Shown here piece by piece: positions 2,363 through 29,704 of a stretch of DNA of 64,000 bases. The stretch covers positions 188,864 through 252,863 of the forward strand of contig RHPI01002503.1 of NCBI GenBank assembly GCA_009103225.1, in the 5' to 3' direction. The first letter of the stretch is position 1, and each line of letters starts with the position of its first letter. The DNA is from Chlorokybus atmophyticus. Lineage: Eukaryota > Plantae > Mesostigma and Chlorokybus algae. The position numbers and the translations under genes were made by a program. Below the pieces are notes generated by a model. That model saw nothing but the letters and a program-made list of their open reading frames with translations, did not search any database and had not been told where the DNA came from.

Positions 2363-3442
2363 TTAGGGAAACACCAGGTTGGAGTGCAGCTCCTCCACTT
2401 CTTTTGACAGCTCCGTCAGCTCGGTCGAAAACTTGGCCTGGTCCTCTTTTGTTACCAAGTCAGGCTTTAAAGGCGCGGGGAGGATGAGCATGCAACTGGT
2501 CGGCCTTTTGGTTGCACCCGCTGTGCCCAGATCCTGTAGAAGAAGAACTCAGTAGCGGTTGAGCTCAACATATGGGAGCAGTAGTGCAAGACACATATAT
2601 GACTGACGGACACACAGATCAAAATACAACCATACATAACGACACGGACACGTTGTACGCGCCTCTTTGGATGGTACATAGATGTATGGCACATCCAACT
2701 CCTCGCAAAGGATAGGTAAGTGGGTGATGACATCGATAGGTGAAATGTCGCCTGCGATAATGCACAGCCTGGCCCAAAAAACAGCACAATCAAGTCAAAG
2801 TCAGCTCGGTAGTAAGTCACTGCGCACTGCATTGGAGCTGTGCTGAGCATCAGAAGGAGAAGCAACAAACACACCCTTTCTGGCCTTTTCGCAGCGCTTT
2901 CACAACCTCTTTCACTCCGCGCTTCAGCTGCTTCTGCTTGGCCGCTTCAAAATAGAACCAAACAATGTCAGCACACCGATGATACTGTGGACACAAAGCC
3001 TAGTGGCATAGTGTGGTATAGCACAGCGATGCTTCTGCGACTTATGAAACTAACTAACGCATCATACTCGCTTACCAAAGAGGCCAATGCAACAGTCAGC
3101 AGGACCTCACTGTGTATGCTTTACACACTTCTAGAATGTGTGGACATGCACAACGCCGATGGCAAGTCATCAGCAAGCTCTGCTGCGTATGACGTGCGTA
3201 GTGCTTTGCAGCAATGTGCACTACCGCGACTGACATAATGGAACGCCTAAGTGCATGCAAAGCGTCCGTGCCCATGCTCATGCCCATGCCCTGGCCTCCA
3301 TACGCGCACCTTTCTTCACAATCTTGAGCGCCTTCTTGTTGAGCTTCTTGCCCGCCAGGGGCTTTGCAATTATAGACACCGCTACTCGCTTCGCCTTGTC
3401 CTTCTCCACCTCCTGCTTGCTGTTGCCGTCCTCCTCGCCCAT
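2363..3442 (-). CDS. NHP2: H/ACA snoRNP subunit 2 (NHP2, L7Ae family)
   Basis: 4 exons: ..[20 protein letters not shown] / [24 protein letters not shown] / [35 protein letters not shown] / [22 protein letters not shown]. Intron 3 has a GC donor (2662-2661). Confidence 0.95.
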
Positions 3443-3846
3443 GGCGCCGACGAAGCTTGCGCTGACACACACCGGCCCCCCAACCCTAACAAGCCCTCAA
3501 CGCCGCCGCCATGGCTTGGACTCTCTGTATTTTCTCTCCTATGCTCCAACCTTCTCTAACTCACCCAGGAGGACCACCTCCGTCTCCTGCGTGTCGCCGC
3601 CCTGCTGCTCCTGCTCCTTCTCCTTCTCCTCGACCACCGCCGCCGCCACCGCCGCTTTCACTCACTCGCGTTATGTAGAGTGCGTTAGCTACCAACTATA
3701 CCGTGAAGCTAACGTGGTGCAGAGCTAACGTTTGTGCCATGTGGTCTGGTCTGGTCTGTGGCCTGGCCTGGCCTGGCCCCGTCTGGCCTGGTGTGTTCGC
3801 TCTGCACTTCCCCTCAGGACAGGCACGGGTAGGAGGTGCCGCCGCT

Positions 3847-6668
3847 ATGAGCAGCAGCAGCAGCTTGGCAGTTGCGGCGGCAGCGGCGCTGCAACTCCTC
3901 CTCCTGCTGTTTGTGGCTTGCGCTGAGGGCGGTGCGTCTCGCAGCAGCAGCTTGTTGACATGCTTGTTTACATGCATAATGCCACTTACAGCGAGCTTCA
4001 GCCTGCGCTGCAACTGAGCCTGCTGTTACCAGACGCACACACTTGCTAGTCTGTGACTTGCTCATGCGTTGCGTTTGTCAAACAAACAGATATGCTGTTT
4101 GTTTGCTTGCTTGATCGTTCATTCGCTGTGTGACAGATTCGGTTGTCGAAGGGGTTGGAATATTGGTAACCTCAGTAACCTGAAATTCACAGCTTGAGTT
4201 GTTTTGTGAAGTATCAACTTCTGTTACAAATCGCCGCAGACTGGATTACAAGCAGCAGCACTGCAGTTGAGCAAGCGTTTACTCAGCCCAGGCTCAGCAC
4301 AGGCTAATCACGAGCAGCAGTGGTTACGTTGTGTTGGTCTAGTATGACACTGTGCATGCGCTTCCGCGCTGTGTGTGTGCGTGTGTGTGTGGCTGGGCGG
4401 GTGGGTGCCAACTCGTGCATATATATCTGAAGCAGTGTACGCCACTTCTATGTGCCATGCGGTGATGATTGCTATTAACAAGTTTTCATACACGTGCCCG
4501 TTTCGTTCAGGTGCAACACCATCGCCGCTGGGTTTGGCGTACCCCTCCTCCTCGTCCTTGCCCTCATCCACGGTGTCAGCATTCATGCCGGAGCAGTACG
4601 ATGGCGAGCTCGCCCGCACCTTCGCCGAGTACGCGTCCGCGGTATCATGTCATGCCATACTTTGCCATTTGCTACTACTGCTGTTGCTGTTGCACGTCTT
4701 GCCTGCCTGTGTGTCGAGTTGGAGCCCAAATGTCATGCAAGTCGTTTGACGTCCGACCAACATGCGTTGAGCGCATCTCTCTCACACACACACACACACA
4801 CACCTGCGCAGGCGTATTGCGAGGACACGAACGCGCTTCTCGCTTGGAACTGCACGCGCTGCGCCCATCGCACAGCTGTAAGACCATCGCCAGCCCTATG
4901 AGACAAGTCATCATACTCAGTCAATGGACACGCACAAACACACGCATGCGCACTCACAAGCACACACGCACGCAATGCACGAGCCCTAACACTGCTGCAC
5001 TGCAGGGCTTCACAGTCGCGGCCGTGGTGAGTGCGCAGCAGGGCGCTCTGCGGGTGAGTAGAAGGTACCACACAAGCAGTGACCTTGGTTGAGTCTCTGA
5101 CGTACTGTGGGTGTATATGTGTTGTTGTTTGAGGCATGTGCCATTCATCGCTGCCATGCGTGCAGGCGTATGTGGGGGAGTGGTCTGTGCCAGGCCAGGC
5201 TCCCATCGTGGTTGTGGCCTTCAAAGGCACACAGTACAACAGGTAGGCAGCCATGCAGAGGACAAGTGTTATGTTGTCAACATGCTGGCGCAAATTGTGA
5301 ACACGCTTGCGCTAGAAAAAGCGGGTGGCATTACTTACACTTGTATTGCAACAGTCTGAGGACCTGGATAAAGAACTTGGACTTTCTGGAGCTGGACTAC
5401 GGGTATCCCGGCGTTGAGGGTGCAAAGGTGAGCGCACGCACGCATTCAGCACCAGTTCAGAGTAGAGTCACTCTCCGCCTCTCTGGTGAGAATCAACCGG
5501 TCACAATTCGCACTTGTCCACGACTTGCCAACCGTATCAACAATAGGAGCGCACATGCCTTGAGGCATTGAGCTTTCCACTGCACGCACGCCCAGAGTGA
5601 CACGTGTTTTGTCTCGTGCGCGCGTGCGCGTGTGTGCCTGCACAATACGCACGCTACACAGCACACATGCACTGATATGCACAAACACAGACAATGTTTC
5701 TTCAATGTGTAGTGTTAACAGTCAACACACTTAGTTTAAACCAACAATGCAGGTGCACTCGGGCTTCTTCACGAGCTACAACTTCACGGACCTAAGGCCC
5801 GGTGTGGTATCCGCCGTCACCTCCCTGCAAGGCAACAACAACCATGGCAATGGCGTCAACAACCACAACAATTACATCCGCACGCGCGTTGAAGCCAACA
5901 ACGGTCAGAAGTGCATCGTCGTGGTCGGCCACAGCCTCGGGGGCGCCTTTGCCGCATTCTGCGCACTCGACTTAAAGGTGGGGTGAAGTATAGTATTCCC
6001 AGCTTTTCAATCCCATACAAGATGTTGTGGCATGTTGACCTTTACGTGCACGCACAGTTGAACTTTGGCTATGAGAATGTGAAAATGGTGACTTTCGGGC
6101 AGCCGCGCATCGGCAATCGCAAGTTCTCGGAGTTCTTCAACTCTCAGGTTGGGTTAAGTGGCTTTTCACACTGTAGCTCTGTATATGTGTGTATGTGTGC
6201 TCTTGAGTTTGTAACAATGTGTGGTATATGACCCGTGCCAGATACCCAACGCGATGCGAATGACGCACCAGAGTGACCCCGTGCCACATTTACCCCCGCT
6301 GCTTGGCAAAGGCTACCGCCACTTTCCAACTGAGGCAAGATAGCAATAGTTATGGTTGTGGCTTTTGTGGCTTTTGCAACATGACACTAATGTTGTTGTG
6401 TGTTTTGCAATGCAGGTGTGGTTGCACTACCAGAAGGGCTTTGCTAAGTACCTGCTCGAGACGGTTTGCGACGGCTCGGGGGAGGACCCAACATGCTGCC
6501 TGTGAGCGAAGCGGACTGTTGTGTCGTAGTGTTCGTTGACATATTTGTGTGTTACCAAACGTTGTGTGACCTTGTGGGGCTGTGGTGGAGTGCAGGTCCT
6601 CCAAGGGCCGCAGCATCTTTGATCACATACACTACTTTGCGCTGCCGATGCACTCGGTCTTCTGTTGA
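3847..6668 (+). CDS. Class-3 (fungal-type) lipase with N-terminal signal peptide
   Basis: Hydrophobic leader LAVAAAAALQLLLLLFVACAEG. Spliced motifs YDGELARTFAEYASA, AWNCTRC, VVAFKGT, VHSGFF, GHSLGGA (nucleophile elbow), TFGQPRIGN, THQSDPVPHLPP, YRHFPTEVW, DHIHYF give a Ser-Asp-His triad. Confidence 0.92.
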
Positions 6669-23129: not shown

Positions 23130-23778
23130 GGTTGTGGACGGCATGGCTGAGACGGAGGAGCAGGAGGAGGAGGTGATGGATCAGGTTGTTGAGGAGGTTG
23201 CTTGCATGGGTTGTATGCAGCAGGCGATGTGGTGTTTTGTACTGGTGCACTGCGTACCGCCAGTGCGGAGTGCACCGACGTACGGTGCGCAGTGTACAAA
23301 AGGTACAGTGTACTGTCCGTATCAGTTGACACTACCACGTGGCTACCAAAGTGTGCGCATTGGATCAGATTTCAAGAATTTGCAAAGTCGCTCATGACAA
23401 TATGCCCATCGTACGTATTGTTTATTTGCATGCAACTACGTGGATAGGTTATTTGCATACAATTATTATTACCGGTATAGGATAGCACATGCAAGTGTGG
23501 AACTGATTATCAACTTATGCATGTCAATCACGCGCATGCACTTAGCTAGCCAGCGCCAAGGGTTTGTGTCCCAGTGTGAACTGTTTGTTGTGGGTGATGA
23601 CATGACATGCGCTGGCTGGTGTGCTTGCTTGTGACTGCTGATGCTAGGGGACCTTATACTATATGCTTGAAGCAACCGCATTTGATACCAACCTTATCAT
23701 GGGCAGTGTCACGCAGTCTGTGGTTATAGTAATAATATGATATGATATGATATAAACTTATAAAGTATTCCTTTTGCA

Positions 23779-24690
23779 ATGCAAGAAGACGTGTTTCATT
23801 ATCTTTGCAATGCTGTCAAACCTATACATGATTACAAAAACTTTTGTACATGTATTACATGAAGTGTCAATAGACCGATGTAAAATGAAGACTATTGCTA
23901 CCGCGTTTTCGTTGAAGACTTTAATAACAAGTAATCAGTAAGTTATAATCTTTCATACAATGAATATACTAGTTGTGTTTTGCACATAATCATTCAAACA
24001 TTACCTCACTGATCAACACCTAATGGACACTTGTACACATCTTTTAAAACTGTATGCCGAAAATTGTTGTATGTATCGTCTTCATGCGTCTGCACAAGAC
24101 AGTCACTAGATAATAATGTGCATACTTGTTATGAACTTTACAACGTGTAAGATTGCAACCGTTGTAAAGTGACTTGCAATAGCTGCAATAGATTTTGCCC
24201 AATGTTAATACAATGTTAACGGCAATATCATCAAGTTTGCCAATAAGTCGAGAGCGATTGGTACAAGTATAATTGCAAGCATGTTTAACGTTGTGTTGGT
24301 TTGAAAAAGCTGGGGACGAAGACGGTTTTGTGAACTTACGTGCCAACTTCCTTTTTTGCGTGAGTAAATTCAAACAATGTGCATTATGTTTGTAACAGCT
24401 GTAATTGTATATGTACATATCTAAAATCGCTCGTGTTGTGGATTGCAAGCCTTGGCGTGCATGTGTACGAGTTCAAAGATTGTCATGAATCATAACATTC
24501 CCAAACATATTTAATACACAATAATGATTCTTTAAAGACATTACGTGAGTATATGAACATCATATTCACAATACCAAACGACGTTTACTTGTTTTTGTGT
24601 TTACGTTTGCAAATCCTTGATTTATACTCGAGCTTGTTTACAACACGTCGCATTCAATGTCAATATGTAGACTTTATCATGGCATCATAA
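23779..24690 (+). pseudogene. Decayed ORF with Cys/His zinc-finger-like segment inside an AT-rich island
   Basis: One frame runs 304 codons from ATG 23779 to TAA 24688-24690, with 11 internal stops (all TAA or TGA). It contains CNRC..CNSC..C..C*RQYHQVC..W..C and a second CNSC. The surrounding ~23.4-25.1 kb region is visibly much more AT-rich than the rest of the window. Confidence 0.4.
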
Positions 24691-25321
24691 TAATAATCTA
24701 ATATACATACCGGTGTGCATGCCTTGCACTTGCATTTGCACGCGTGCATGCAACACATATGTAGGTCACAAGCCCCGATAGGCTGGCCGGTATAATTGTT
24801 GGTTTTTACTAATAAGTTTTGCTAATGTTATGTATCGTTTGCCATTGGATTTCTATAGCCTATGCATAGTTTACACAAATGTGGTTAAATGGTACCTCTC
24901 CCCTTACTACGCTTCGTCTGTCGTGGTATTTCCATCCACCTAGGGCAGCAAGGGCAGCAAGCTGAGAAAGACTGCGCCCGTACATTATGGCTGCATCACA
25001 AGTGGAGTGGGGCTCCCAAGCCATATTGTATGTCAACAAGTCTTAGAGTTTGTGGTTTTGCAGTCCTGAACTTCAGCATTGCTACCTTCGATGCCCCATC
25101 ATTACAAATGCCCGTGTAATTGCAAGTATGCAATGAGCTAGCATGACCGCTCACCAATTCTCTTTTCTACCTGTTGTGGAAATTCGTTGTTTCTTCATGA
25201 ACGACGCATATCACACCTACCCACTGAACATGTGATGGACACAACAAGCTAAGCACCATTTAGCTACCCATTGACTGGGTACGCTCAAGGCACCGTGGTC
25301 ATTCACATCCTTACGTGTGGA

Positions 25322-27522
25322 TTAACTAAGGGCGGTATTGTGTTCGGTGTGTTTCAAAGTGAGGCAATGGTCCTCATCCATACTTGCTATCTGCAAAGTG
25401 TTCTGCTTGCTCGTTAAGAGCCCTTTAACACTTTGCGGCGGCTTGGCAATACCAGCGGCAACGAGAGACCTGAAGCCTTCCAATGCGTTGGAGCCATCGA
25501 AACGCACAGAGTAGGAGACTGAGCTGGTTGAGGCATCATTATCGTCGCCATCTTCTTGCCCAAACAGAGGGTCATGCACCTGTGGGAAAGAGGCATGCAA
25601 GGTTGCGTACATGCTGGGCAAAAGCACATGAGAGTTTCCGTTGGGGCGTTTGACATGATGCTTTGAAGCACGTACCTGAAACTCTATGTGATCAAGTGCG
25701 GGAAGCGGGCCCGACCCAAAGAGCTGCTCTGCTAACACTTGAGATGCTGGCTTTGCTGTTTGTTTGTCTGCAGCTGTCACACAACACGTGCACACCGTTT
25801 GAACATAACCGCAAGTAGTAATATGGACTCTCAGCCAAACTCCACAACTCTGCACCTTTCATTGGCCGCTTCCGCTTGTTACGCTCCAATGGCCCGCCTG
25901 TCTCCACCCCTGACTGCTCAGGCAAGGAACTGCTGCTGTCCCCATGGACCAATTGAAACAGCGCATCTGCACATTTGCACACAACCAACATCACCATACC
26001 AACATGCTTGAGACGCGACAAGATGCTACTCAAGCCTGTACCTATTCGTTTGCCGCTCAGGTTCTGCTCTTCAACATGGCTGCAGCCCAGCGCGGCGCCG
26101 ACAGCATGCAGGATATACGGTTTGTGCTCGTGGCGCGGGCTCGACCACAGCACGTATGGTGACCTCGTGTGGTAGACAAGGTAGCACGCCGCCGCCTGCT
26201 GCTGCCGTGCGGTTGCGCCCGGCGTGTCTGCAGCAATGCGAAGCCACAACGCGTCGCCGGACGCCCGCACCAGAGTGTGCTGGATCAAGGAGCATCCAAC
26301 GTTCAACCGCAGCTGTGTCATATGTTTGAAAAGCCAACACTACTTCGCTTGTAGTTGGTCTTGTTACCTGATGATAGTATATGCTGAACTCTTGTGTGAT
26401 TCGCGATGCGAGCGCCGTGCCATCAATCTCAGGCCTGGCCCACTGCCCTGCATGAATGCGTGACCAACTTGTGAATAAGCAGGCACTACTGGCGTCATTG
26501 CATAGCAAGCCAATGGCAAACCCACCTGAACTTTGGGGTATATGCAGGGCGTGCCATCGCTTGGATGTCGGACGTGCACGTATATCTGCATAACAAGCAA
26601 CCATAAGATGTGTGCATGGTACCAATACTGACCCAATCACGACACAAGCCTGAATGCATGTTCTCTGTCTTGCGAACAGTTACAAGTTGCGCATGTAGAC
26701 ATGCATGCAACGTGCTGGGTGGCTTGACTCACATGCCAGATCAACCTCGGCAACCTGCTCTGGCGTAGCGCCTTCATCCTGCAGCGTATGGAATGGAAAT
26801 GCACCACGTTCGTTGTTGGTTACCAACTTGCAAGCACGCAGCAAAACCTACCTCTTACCAGATGGTCGTCGAGCATGCGATCAACAGTGGCGTGCTTGCT
26901 TTCGCTGCTCGTCACCTGCCCGCCCCATTGCCGCAGCAGCTGCATATGCAGACGTGCAACACATCAGTCAACGCTCACAAACACATACGCAATGCTTGAT
27001 TGTTAAAATGCTTTTGATTGAGAAGACGTGTGCATTGTCCAAACAATACTGTTAGCTGCGTTGGCCACCAGCAGCTGAAATTTATTGGACAGGCCTTTGC
27101 CGCATACTGCAAACAAAGGTGAGACGCCGTGCATGTCGTGCTGTTTGCAATGCCGTTTTGTCAGTCAATTCAGGGTATGATTAGTTCTGCTTGTGAGTAG
27201 CGTGGACCTGCGCATTAGCAATAAAGTTGTCAAGCAGCCATCGTTGAGACAAACTTGCTTTCCCCTCGGGGATTGGGCCGTTCGGTCACTCGGTGCTTTG
27301 GTCGCATTGCAACAGTTACTGTCAAGACAACAACACCATCCAAGTCCAGCAGAGAGCACAGCAGCAGAGCCTTGCAGACAATCACGGCTGATTCACACTG
27401 CAAGGACACAAAAAAACTGAAACGCCGTCAACAACAACCCCAGCGCCAACCTCATCTAGCTCGTGCTTGCGGAGGCGCTTCAGCATGCCGCGCAGCGTCG
27501 CCCGGTCCGTGACGCCGGCCAT
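25322..27522 (-). CDS. CENPN: Centromere protein N (CENP-N / Chl4 / Mis15)
   Basis: Spliced MAGVTDRATLRGMLKRLRKHELDE/LLRQW../DEGATPEQVAEVDLA/YIRARPTSKRWHAL../ALWLRIAAD..CYLVYHTRSPYVLWSS..ILHAVGAALG../VRFDGSNALEGFRSLVAAGIA. This is collinear with remembered vertebrate CENP-N blocks (ILKAW, LLDIIY..KVW, AVWIRIAWG..YVVYYSQTPY, FSSPHLLEALKSLAPAGIA). Confidence 0.85.
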
Positions 27523-28277
27523 GCCTGCTTAAGCTCAAGCAGCTGTAGCGAACTTTGAGGCCTGTGGTCTAAGCCTGTAGCCTAACGGCTCACGCCTAGC
27601 TTATGCGCAACTGTCTCCTAGTGGCCGGTTGGGGCAGGCGCCGGTTGGTGATTAGGCCTCCCACCTCCACCTCCACCGTCGCCCCCGCCTCCGCCCTCCA
27701 ACGACGAGGTCATTGAGGACAGAGACAAGCATGAGGCGGTGTATGAGGCGACTTGGCGCCACACGCAGCTTCGTCTGAACGCGTGTGCGTGCGCCAAGCA
27801 GTCATAGCAAGCACTTGTACAGGCTTAATCATAGGCCAGATGCATCACAGTATTCAAGTGCTAAACTAGCAAGGCACAAGCAAGCCAAGTATAAGCCAGC
27901 AACAACAACAAGCAGCCAGGACTTTATTGTAGCAGGGGCGGTGCTTAACCTATTGCTATGTGCAGTAGCTGTGCAAGTGCAAGTGCAAGTGCAAGTAGTG
28001 GGGGAGGAGGTGGAGGGGTGTGAAGAAGTTGGCAATAGGGTAGCAACCAACGTGTACATGTTGTATGCCTGCGCTACCACCACCATGCGTGTGCATTCAT
28101 TGCGCTTTTCACCAACACCGTACACACTAAGTAAGTACGAGCAAGCATGAGAGAGAGGCTCAGAGCCAGTGCAACCTTCAACCGCAACCAAGAGAAATAA
28201 ACAAAGAATCAAACACACGCAACTTCCCACTGCACAACCCAACATTCCCTCCCGGAATCAACATCCCCCAGCCGCTA

Positions 28278-28365: not shown

Positions 28366-28399
<34 letters not shown>

Positions 28400-29704
28400 C
28401 TCCACTACCCCACCCACTGCTCCATCCACTACCCCATCCGCTACTTCCTCCACTACTCGTTCCACTACTCGGCCCATGATCCCGGCTCTGACTGTCATGC
28501 TGATTCTCATGATGGTTGTGTGAACGGCTGGTTCCCACATCATCGTCGTCCCATGCGCTCAGCAACGCCCACCCGTCGTCGTTGTCGTCCTTGCGGTTGT
28601 TGCGTGTCGTTGTTGGGGAAGGAGGGCCGGGGAGGTAGCGGCGCTTGTTGGAGGAGGAGGAGGAGGAGCGGGGCTGAAGGGCGCGAGAGAGCCAGATGGC
28701 GAAGGTGGCAAGAAGAGCGAACCTGGTGGGTGCGGGTGTGGGTGCGGGTGTGGGTACAAGTAAGAGCGTGTGCTTGCATATGCGAGTGTGCATGCGTGCG
28801 TGCATGGTCGCATGTGCAAGCGTGCATGGGTGTACATCCTCGTATGTGTATGTGCATGTGCACTTGTGCATGCGTGCACGCATGCGTAGGTACTTGCTTC
28901 GCTACAGCAGCAGTTCAGTTATTTCTTACATGAACACTTCGCCAAGGTCAGTCACAACGCCGCCAGTGACCCAGACGACGAGCCACACCGCGAGCACGGC
29001 GCCGACGTACTTGAGGCGCATGGCGGACGTGCCTGGCGCCGCCAGCAGTTGTCTGCACGCGCACACAACCACAACATATGCCACATGCTCGAGTCAGCCG
29101 TTGACACAATAACAGCTGCAAGACAATAGATAAACTACCCGACCACCCAACATGCCAGAAACGCAGTGTGCATGCAGCGCAAGGCACAGCTTGCAGTAGG
29201 AAGTTCACACATGCAACCAATGCTGGATGGTGGGTGACACACAACACGCGCTATGCTTAGAGGCGGACATTGCATACACACAGTCCATGTTGCAAGAGTG
29301 CAACATTACTGCGTGTAGACGCAATTGCCACGGTAAAAACAAACAAACAGACACAACCACTCCTTCCATGCCACAGCCATCCCCTTCTCTCACTTGGACG
29401 TCTTGACAGTGGCTCCCCACACTTCCTGCGCCGCCGCCGCTGCTCCCGCAGCCGGTCCCCCCACCCGCGCCCCTCGTGGTTTCCTGGCGCGCTCGGTGCC
29501 GTCAGCCATGGCGACCACGCCGCCGTTGACATGGCTGCGGCGGGAGGGGAGCAGCCTTGACGGTCCTAGCCGCAATGGACTGAGACATAGACCCTTCCCG
29601 GGACTTCTGAGGGAAGTTGGCCGCTCCACTCCCCGGACACTGAACCTGGCACGGCATGCTGACGACACTAACGTCGTTGGGGACACCGCCGCCATCGCCG
29701 CCAT
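28278..29704 (-). CDS. Orphan protein: plastid-type transit peptide, two hydrophobic segments, Gly/Ser/Trp/His-rich tail
   Basis: 3 phase-compatible exons: MAAMAAVSPTTLVSSACRARFSVR..TVKTSK / QLL..YVGAVLAVWLVVWVTGGVV..FM / RFALLATFAIWLSRAL..SGWGSGWSSGWGSGG(S)n HHHH..DCGGGDD*. Confidence 0.65.

Follow-up and report, generated by a model that had tools for sequence, protein, structure and literature searches.

Human CENP-N is composed of three blocks, namely a pyrin domain, a CLN homology domain (CLN-HD) and a CENP-L dimerisation domain (PMC5777823). Its described contacts with DNA are made by K15, P17, R42, R44, K45, K81, K148, M167, R170, R194 and R196, and the L1 loop is contacted by E3, E7, R11, K143 and the beta3-beta4 loop (PMC5777823). 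The yeast members of the family are Chl4 of budding yeast and Mis15 of fission yeast.

A 2017 survey by van Hooff and colleagues reported the CCAN to be absent from all Archaeplastida (PMC5579357), and when the orthologue files of that study for CenpH, I, K, L, M, N, P, Q, T, U and W were searched for six Archaeplastida species names, none of the six was present. A 2025 study of Arabidopsis, like plant papers before it, gives a CCAN list that consists of CENP-C, O, S and X only, and the retained O, S and X of land plants do not localise to kinetochores (PMC12526889). In Arabidopsis and moss, CENP-C alone among the retained CCAN proteins is found there (PMC12526889, PMC9252888). The preliminary description of the locus reported here had given the same land-plant inventory, CENP-C and few other subunits (O, S, X), and both PMC12526889 and van Hooff 2017 agree with it. 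Mesostigma and Chlorokybus together form the earliest-diverging clade of streptophytes (PMC7027972); the paper describing their genomes does not mention kinetochores. In the literature that we searched, most of it outside subscription journals, we found no paper that records CENP-N in a green alga, no survey that records other CCAN subunits there, and none that already lists CENP-N across the streptophyte algae. A gene model and an automatic Pfam label for the Chlorokybus gene were already public; what is new is its recognition and verification as CENP-N.

The gene lies on the minus strand of a 64-kb stretch of the Chlorokybus atmophyticus genome (the window, to which all coordinates refer) and occupies positions 25322-27522. 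It has nine exons, from the ATG at 27522 to the stop at 25322-25324, and its eight introns, all GT-AG, measure 511, 80, 147, 78, 88, 75, 82 and 96 nt. The spliced coding sequence of 1044 nt encodes 347 amino acids and is identical in product to a public Chlorokybus model (P0001; eukprot jgi/Chlat1/6238/Chrsp44S05851). We assembled our gene model manually, using GT-AG sites and open frames, and then corrected it by means of transcript contigs. The preliminary description had placed a nine-exon gene at these coordinates, and both its limits and its exon count proved exact when compared with the splice sites, the transcript contigs and the public model.

Four public runs filed under one organism code include part of this stretch, and contigs from them were placed on 25200-27700. 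The runs are assemblies and are presumed to derive from RNA; the contigs lack introns and have canonical junctions, as is expected of spliced mRNA. One run (X1) contains a single contig of 1137 nt that extends from 27542 to 25249, crosses all eight junctions, the introns of which read CT..AC on the plus strand, and shows no mismatch. Another (X2), from a different and older study, contributes two contigs that confirm introns 1, 6, 7 and 8. The Chlorokybus CENP-N gene is intact and transcribed. The contigs also give minimum extents for the untranslated regions, which are 27523-27588 at the 5' end (reached to 27542 in X1 and to 27588 in X2) and 25249-25321 at the 3' end, where the X1 contig stops.

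The exons follow the domain order of the protein. From exon 1 (27451-27522; 24 codons) come helix 1 of the pyrin-like domain and the beginning of helix 2; the junction of this exon, 27451/26939, is present in contigs of both X1 and X2. The pyrin-like domain continues in exon 2 (26859-26939; 27 codons), which carries the conserved Trp29 and Lys39 and is placed by its splice sites and by contigs. Exon 3 (26733-26778; 46 nt) is placed by splice sites, contigs and translation, and is followed by exon 4 (26526-26585; 60 nt), in which contigs and the alignment of homologues locate a near-invariant K-x-W motif (Lys75, Trp77). The CLN homology domain begins in exon 5 (26368-26447; 80 nt), defined by splice sites, contigs and translation, and its core beta-sheet, including the 'ALWLRI' strand, is encoded by exon 6 (26042-26279; 238 nt), for which the junction 26279/26368 is seen in the X1 contig. 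Exon 7 (25856-25966; 111 nt) supplies a linker, in which residues 205-217 have a pLDDT below 50 in the AlphaFold2 model and a basic KRKRP stretch occurs; its limits are those of the contigs. The C-terminal domain begins in exon 8 (25676-25773; 98 nt) with a conserved FG...P.L motif (Gly249, Pro254), supported by contigs and the homologue alignment. [quoted passage not shown]

For exon 6, an alternative acceptor at an in-frame AG (26312), which would give a product of 358 amino acids, was considered and rejected. The acceptor at 26279 was accepted because the X1 contig splices there and only that translation equals the public model. The alternative AG lies 33 nt upstream of the acceptor used, and the intervening segment (26280-26312, minus strand) would add the 11 residues LRLNVGCSLIQ. 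No use of the 26312 acceptor was seen in the transcript contigs; assembled contigs drop rare isoforms, so minor use is possible.

The surroundings of the gene have several features of their own. Just downstream of its 3' end, the 1.5 kb from 23500 to 25000 has a GC content of 0.37-0.39, as against 0.50-0.60 on either side. The sole long open reading frame in this low-GC stretch (24047-24448, minus strand) matches no Pfam family, and neither do the neighboring open reading frames between 22 and 29 kb of the window. Tandem repeats occur upstream of the gene at 27971-27996 and 28366-28470, and comprise (GTGCAA)x4, (CTA)x11 and a 12-nt unit repeated 6.6 times.

The assignment of the protein to the CENP-N family rests on profile, structure and expression, and is secure. 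The whole protein matches Pfam PF05238 ('Kinetochore protein CHL4 like') with 109.7 bits (E 2.8e-31), far above the curated cut-off of 25 bits for this family. The match does not depend on the gene model, as single exon pieces matched PF05238 collinearly (profile positions 152-215 and 319-392) before any model had been built, and the open stretch 26043-26312, which contains exon 6, is by itself a Pfam CENP-N match with an E-value of 1.3e-4. In a phmmer search of the PDB, the best match was human CENP-N (7xhn_N; E 1.5e-7), with residues 38-318 of the query aligned to 44-324 of the chain; there was no significant match in this search beyond human CENP-N chains. Family-wide motifs were found in all three domains, including those of the C-terminal domain.

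An AlphaFold2 model computed from an alignment of 76 homologues has a mean pLDDT of 86 and a pTM of 0.82, with low confidence only in the linker at 205-217 and in the last 14 residues. In the predicted fold, residues 7-70 are helical, residues 77-200 make up a domain of mixed sheet and residues 239-327 a sheet/helix domain. When this model was compared with the PDB using Foldseek, human CENP-N in the CCAN structure (7pkn_N) ranked top over 339 columns (E 5e-20, TM 0.70/0.76), followed by yeast Chl4 (8ow1_N and 6qld_N; E ~1e-12, TM ~0.6) and then by the crystal structure of the human N-terminal region (6eqt_A; TMt 0.76, rmsd 3.3). Chains of the paralogous CENP-L/Iml3 gave E-values of only 9e-4 to 7e-3 and TM-scores below 0.3. 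Language-model features point the same way, with a similarity of 0.98 to CENP-N clusters versus 0.79 to CENP-L; the protein is closer to CENP-N than to its paralogue. The collinearity with all three blocks of CENP-N that was proposed in the preliminary description is thus borne out by the Pfam profile, by the alignment with human CENP-N and by the full-length Foldseek match to 7pkn_N. The Chl4/Mis15 profile search that it had suggested as a check gave the score quoted above, and both the profile and the structural matches are significant.

At all seven of the alignment columns that are at least 90% conserved among the 76 homologues, the Chlorokybus protein has the family residue (M1, W77, W125, L187, L195, G249 and P254). 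Among the human contact positions, a basic residue is kept in the HMMER alignment at K45, K81, K143 and R196 (Chlorokybus K39, K75, R138 and K190), and a hand alignment of the N-terminal 30 residues suggests that basic residues are also kept at K15 (R16) and, beyond the contacts listed, at K10 (R11). The residues corresponding to human R44, K148, R170 and R194 are S38, A143, E164 and S188 in the HMMER alignment, and are not kept. The triad E3, E7 and R11, through which human CENP-N contacts the CENP-A L1 loop, aligns by eye with V4, A8 and G12 and is likewise not kept. Since basic residues persist at several human contact positions, general DNA binding by Chlorokybus CENP-N is plausible, to judge from the sequence. 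CENH3-specific recognition, if there is any, would use different contacts, because the residues that read the L1 loop in the human protein have been replaced.

When 1.84 billion cluster representatives were searched exhaustively with phmmer, 107 proteins had E-values of 1e-3 or less, and the best relative among all of the representatives was a protein of Mesostigma viride (P0002, Mesvir1/17419; E 4e-24). Like the Chlorokybus protein, the Mesostigma protein, from the sister lineage, is recognized by the Pfam CENP-N profile on its own (45.4 bits, above the cut-off), and the two are 32% identical over 198 amino acids with a pairwise E-value of 1e-31. The public Mesostigma model differs in length, with 1133 amino acids versus 347, and its C-terminal domain is more divergent. 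Its CENP-N part corresponds approximately to residues 760-1110, within the last ~390 residues, and the first ~740 residues carry no Pfam family. The long model is probably a fused gene model, although a lineage-specific extension is a possible alternative.

Source organisms were checked for 30 of the 107 matches. Those named include animals, choanoflagellates, other holozoans, fungi, an apusomonad, a CRuMs species, a malawimonad and Telonema. Besides Mesostigma, no other green plant or alga is found among these 30; the lack of other streptophyte algae, such as Klebsormidium, Chara and Zygnematophyceae, among matches to a single query sequence is not proof of absence. The matches next in rank after Mesostigma come from a glomeromycete fungus and from deuterostomes, and in an all-against-all comparison of the remaining matches the nearest neighbor was a protein other than those of the two algae for all but one environmental cluster, described below. 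Word-index searches with the exon 6-7 frame, the full protein and the 76-sequence alignment recovered only the query itself or members of the query alignment, because the family is too divergent for words of five residues.

In a tree of 40 rows, Chlorokybus and Mesostigma both fall in a polytomy with lineages of protists, and neither lies within the well-supported clades of metazoans and of fungi. The deep branches of this tree are not resolved and give neither alga a deeper placement. A clade of Chlorokybus and Mesostigma was not rejected by the AU test (p 0.595), and the tree constrained to contain it was 3.9 lnL better than the free tree. This result fits vertical inheritance, and lends no support to contamination or transfer.

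The environmental exception (P0022/P0111) comprises 29 near-identical members of 293-294 amino acids, encoded by intronless genes on Tara Oceans metagenome contigs (L008-L013) with a GC content of 58-64%; on L008, for example, the gene lies at 3227-4108. Within the match set, the nearest relative of P0022 is the Chlorokybus protein, with which it aligns over 266 residues at 26% identity (pairwise E 3e-20). It lacks approximately the first 50 residues and scores 17.3 bits with the Pfam CENP-N profile, under the cut-off, while its language-model features are CENP-N-like (0.96). The open reading frames that adjoin the gene match no Pfam family significantly, with one sub-threshold match to a PA domain. 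A marine green alga is a possible source, as one option among several GC-rich picoeukaryotes. A second environmental group (P0005/P0108; 341-363 amino acids), on mRNA-sized contigs of ~1.3 kb (L001-L006) from JGI metatranscriptome and Logan data, was considered as a green-lineage relative on account of its good score against both algae. This was rejected, as P0005 groups with Telonema subtile with an SH-aLRT of 99%, and these sequences are probably from telonemids.

We consider it likely that the locus is the Chlorokybus orthologue of CENP-N, intact and transcribed, that it was inherited vertically from an ancestor shared with Mesostigma, and that its product would bind DNA and CENH3 as expected by homology. 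By homology, too, the pyrin-like helical bundle at the N-terminus and the CLN homology domain in the center would form a basic surface that grips DNA, and the same surface would be seated on the CENH3 nucleosome at centromeric DNA. The C-terminal domain may pair with CENP-L, and the protein would be located at the kinetochore. To our knowledge, the sole job of the C-terminal domain of CENP-N is the binding of CENP-L, and a kinetochore role is most likely, judging from the sequence, because this domain is well conserved.

Retention of the gene is not in itself proof of such a role, because the O, S and X subunits of land plants are found off the kinetochores. The protein could accordingly be a true CENP-N homologue that has no kinetochore role and is kept for some other function related to chromatin or DNA, and we regard this as improbable but deserving of serious attention. 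Other functions have been proposed for CENP-S/X, and possibly for CENP-O, in land plants, and the residues by which human CENP-N reads the L1 loop of CENP-A are not conserved in Chlorokybus. The restriction of kinetochore localisation to CENP-C among the retained CCAN proteins of Arabidopsis and moss (PMC12526889, PMC9252888) also fits a lost role, and we give this explanation some weight because, to judge from land plants, a CCAN protein can be kept and yet depart from the kinetochore. Against it, all three domains are conserved and confidently folded in the model, including the region that would pair with CENP-L. Furthermore, we know of no role for CENP-N outside the kinetochore in any organism.

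Contamination, or recent horizontal transfer from a fungus, an animal, a protist or another non-green eukaryote, is very improbable. It could draw on the rank of a glomeromycete fungus and of deuterostomes directly after Mesostigma, and on the unresolved polytomy into which the protein falls. However, the gene lies within the 64-kb window and is interrupted by eight spliceosomal introns, it belongs to the JGI Chlorokybus gene set, and two separate studies, filed under one and the same organism, have transcript contigs that match it perfectly. Its best relative is that of the sister alga, the better-scoring tree unites the two, and the protein stands outside the metazoan and fungal clades. Still more remote is the idea of a decaying relic, in which the gene would be a pseudogene that is still transcribed but nearing loss. 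Since the land plants and chlorophytes sampled have lost the family, ongoing loss is conceivable, but the frame of 347 codons is open over nine exons with canonical splice sites, the near-invariant positions of the family are kept and the fold is modelled with confidence.

Returning to the reading of an inherited CENP-N, its presence in both Chlorokybus and Mesostigma implies that their common ancestor had CENP-N, and hence that its loss from the land-plant line came after that split. The preliminary description had proposed that this alga retains a more ancestral CCAN and that this would date CCAN loss within the plant lineage; the proposal stands for CENP-N, which is verified, common to Mesostigma and lost after the split, and its extension to the complex as a whole is more tentative. 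That the CCAN of Chlorokybus and Mesostigma is still working and largely complete (CENP-LN with HIK, TW and OPQU) is a possibility that we rate slightly below its contrary. If it were so, the ancestor of green plants would have had a full inner kinetochore, and the plant kinetochore with CENP-C only would have arisen later within the streptophytes, while the chlorophytes sampled would have undergone losses of their own. In that case, the Tara Oceans sequences would be a hint of marine green algae that keep a CENP-N below detection by the standard profile.

A CENP-N that is verified and expressed, in the two algae that diverge earliest among streptophytes, alters the picture of a CCAN absent from Archaeplastida. 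It indicates that the module that reads CENP-A was present, at least in part, in the green ancestor, and provides a dated point for the simplification of the plant kinetochore. Both algae can be cultured, and a canonical inner kinetochore could be compared in them with the reduced version of plants. Our claim concerns the distribution of CENP-N and not a new mechanism, and its interest would rise if the remaining CCAN subunits were confirmed.

Among known proteins, human CENP-N (7pkn and 7qoo chain N; 6eqt, 6c0w) offers the closest structural comparison. It is of similar length (339 amino acids versus 347) and arranges its domains likewise, from the pyrin-like bundle through the CLN homology domain to the C-terminal CENP-L-binding domain, although identity in the structural alignment is only ~16-17%. 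Relative to the human protein, the Chlorokybus protein lacks seven residues between helices 2 and 3, and its linker (residues 205-237) is unrelated to that of human CENP-N. The human beta3-beta4 loop (PNQYK), which reads the RG loop of CENP-A, is replaced in Chlorokybus together with the N-terminal triad. Chl4 and Mis15 of the yeasts (8ow1 and 6qld chain N; 4je3) belong to the same family and have the same fold, but are longer and contain insertions. In both size and sequence, the Chlorokybus protein is nearer to the animal, choanoflagellate and protist type than to the yeast type. The paralogous partner CENP-L/Iml3 has the TBP-like fold of the CLN homology domain in common with CENP-N (PMC5777823, PMC6601020), but CENP-L is without a pyrin-like N-terminal domain, whereas the Chlorokybus protein has one.
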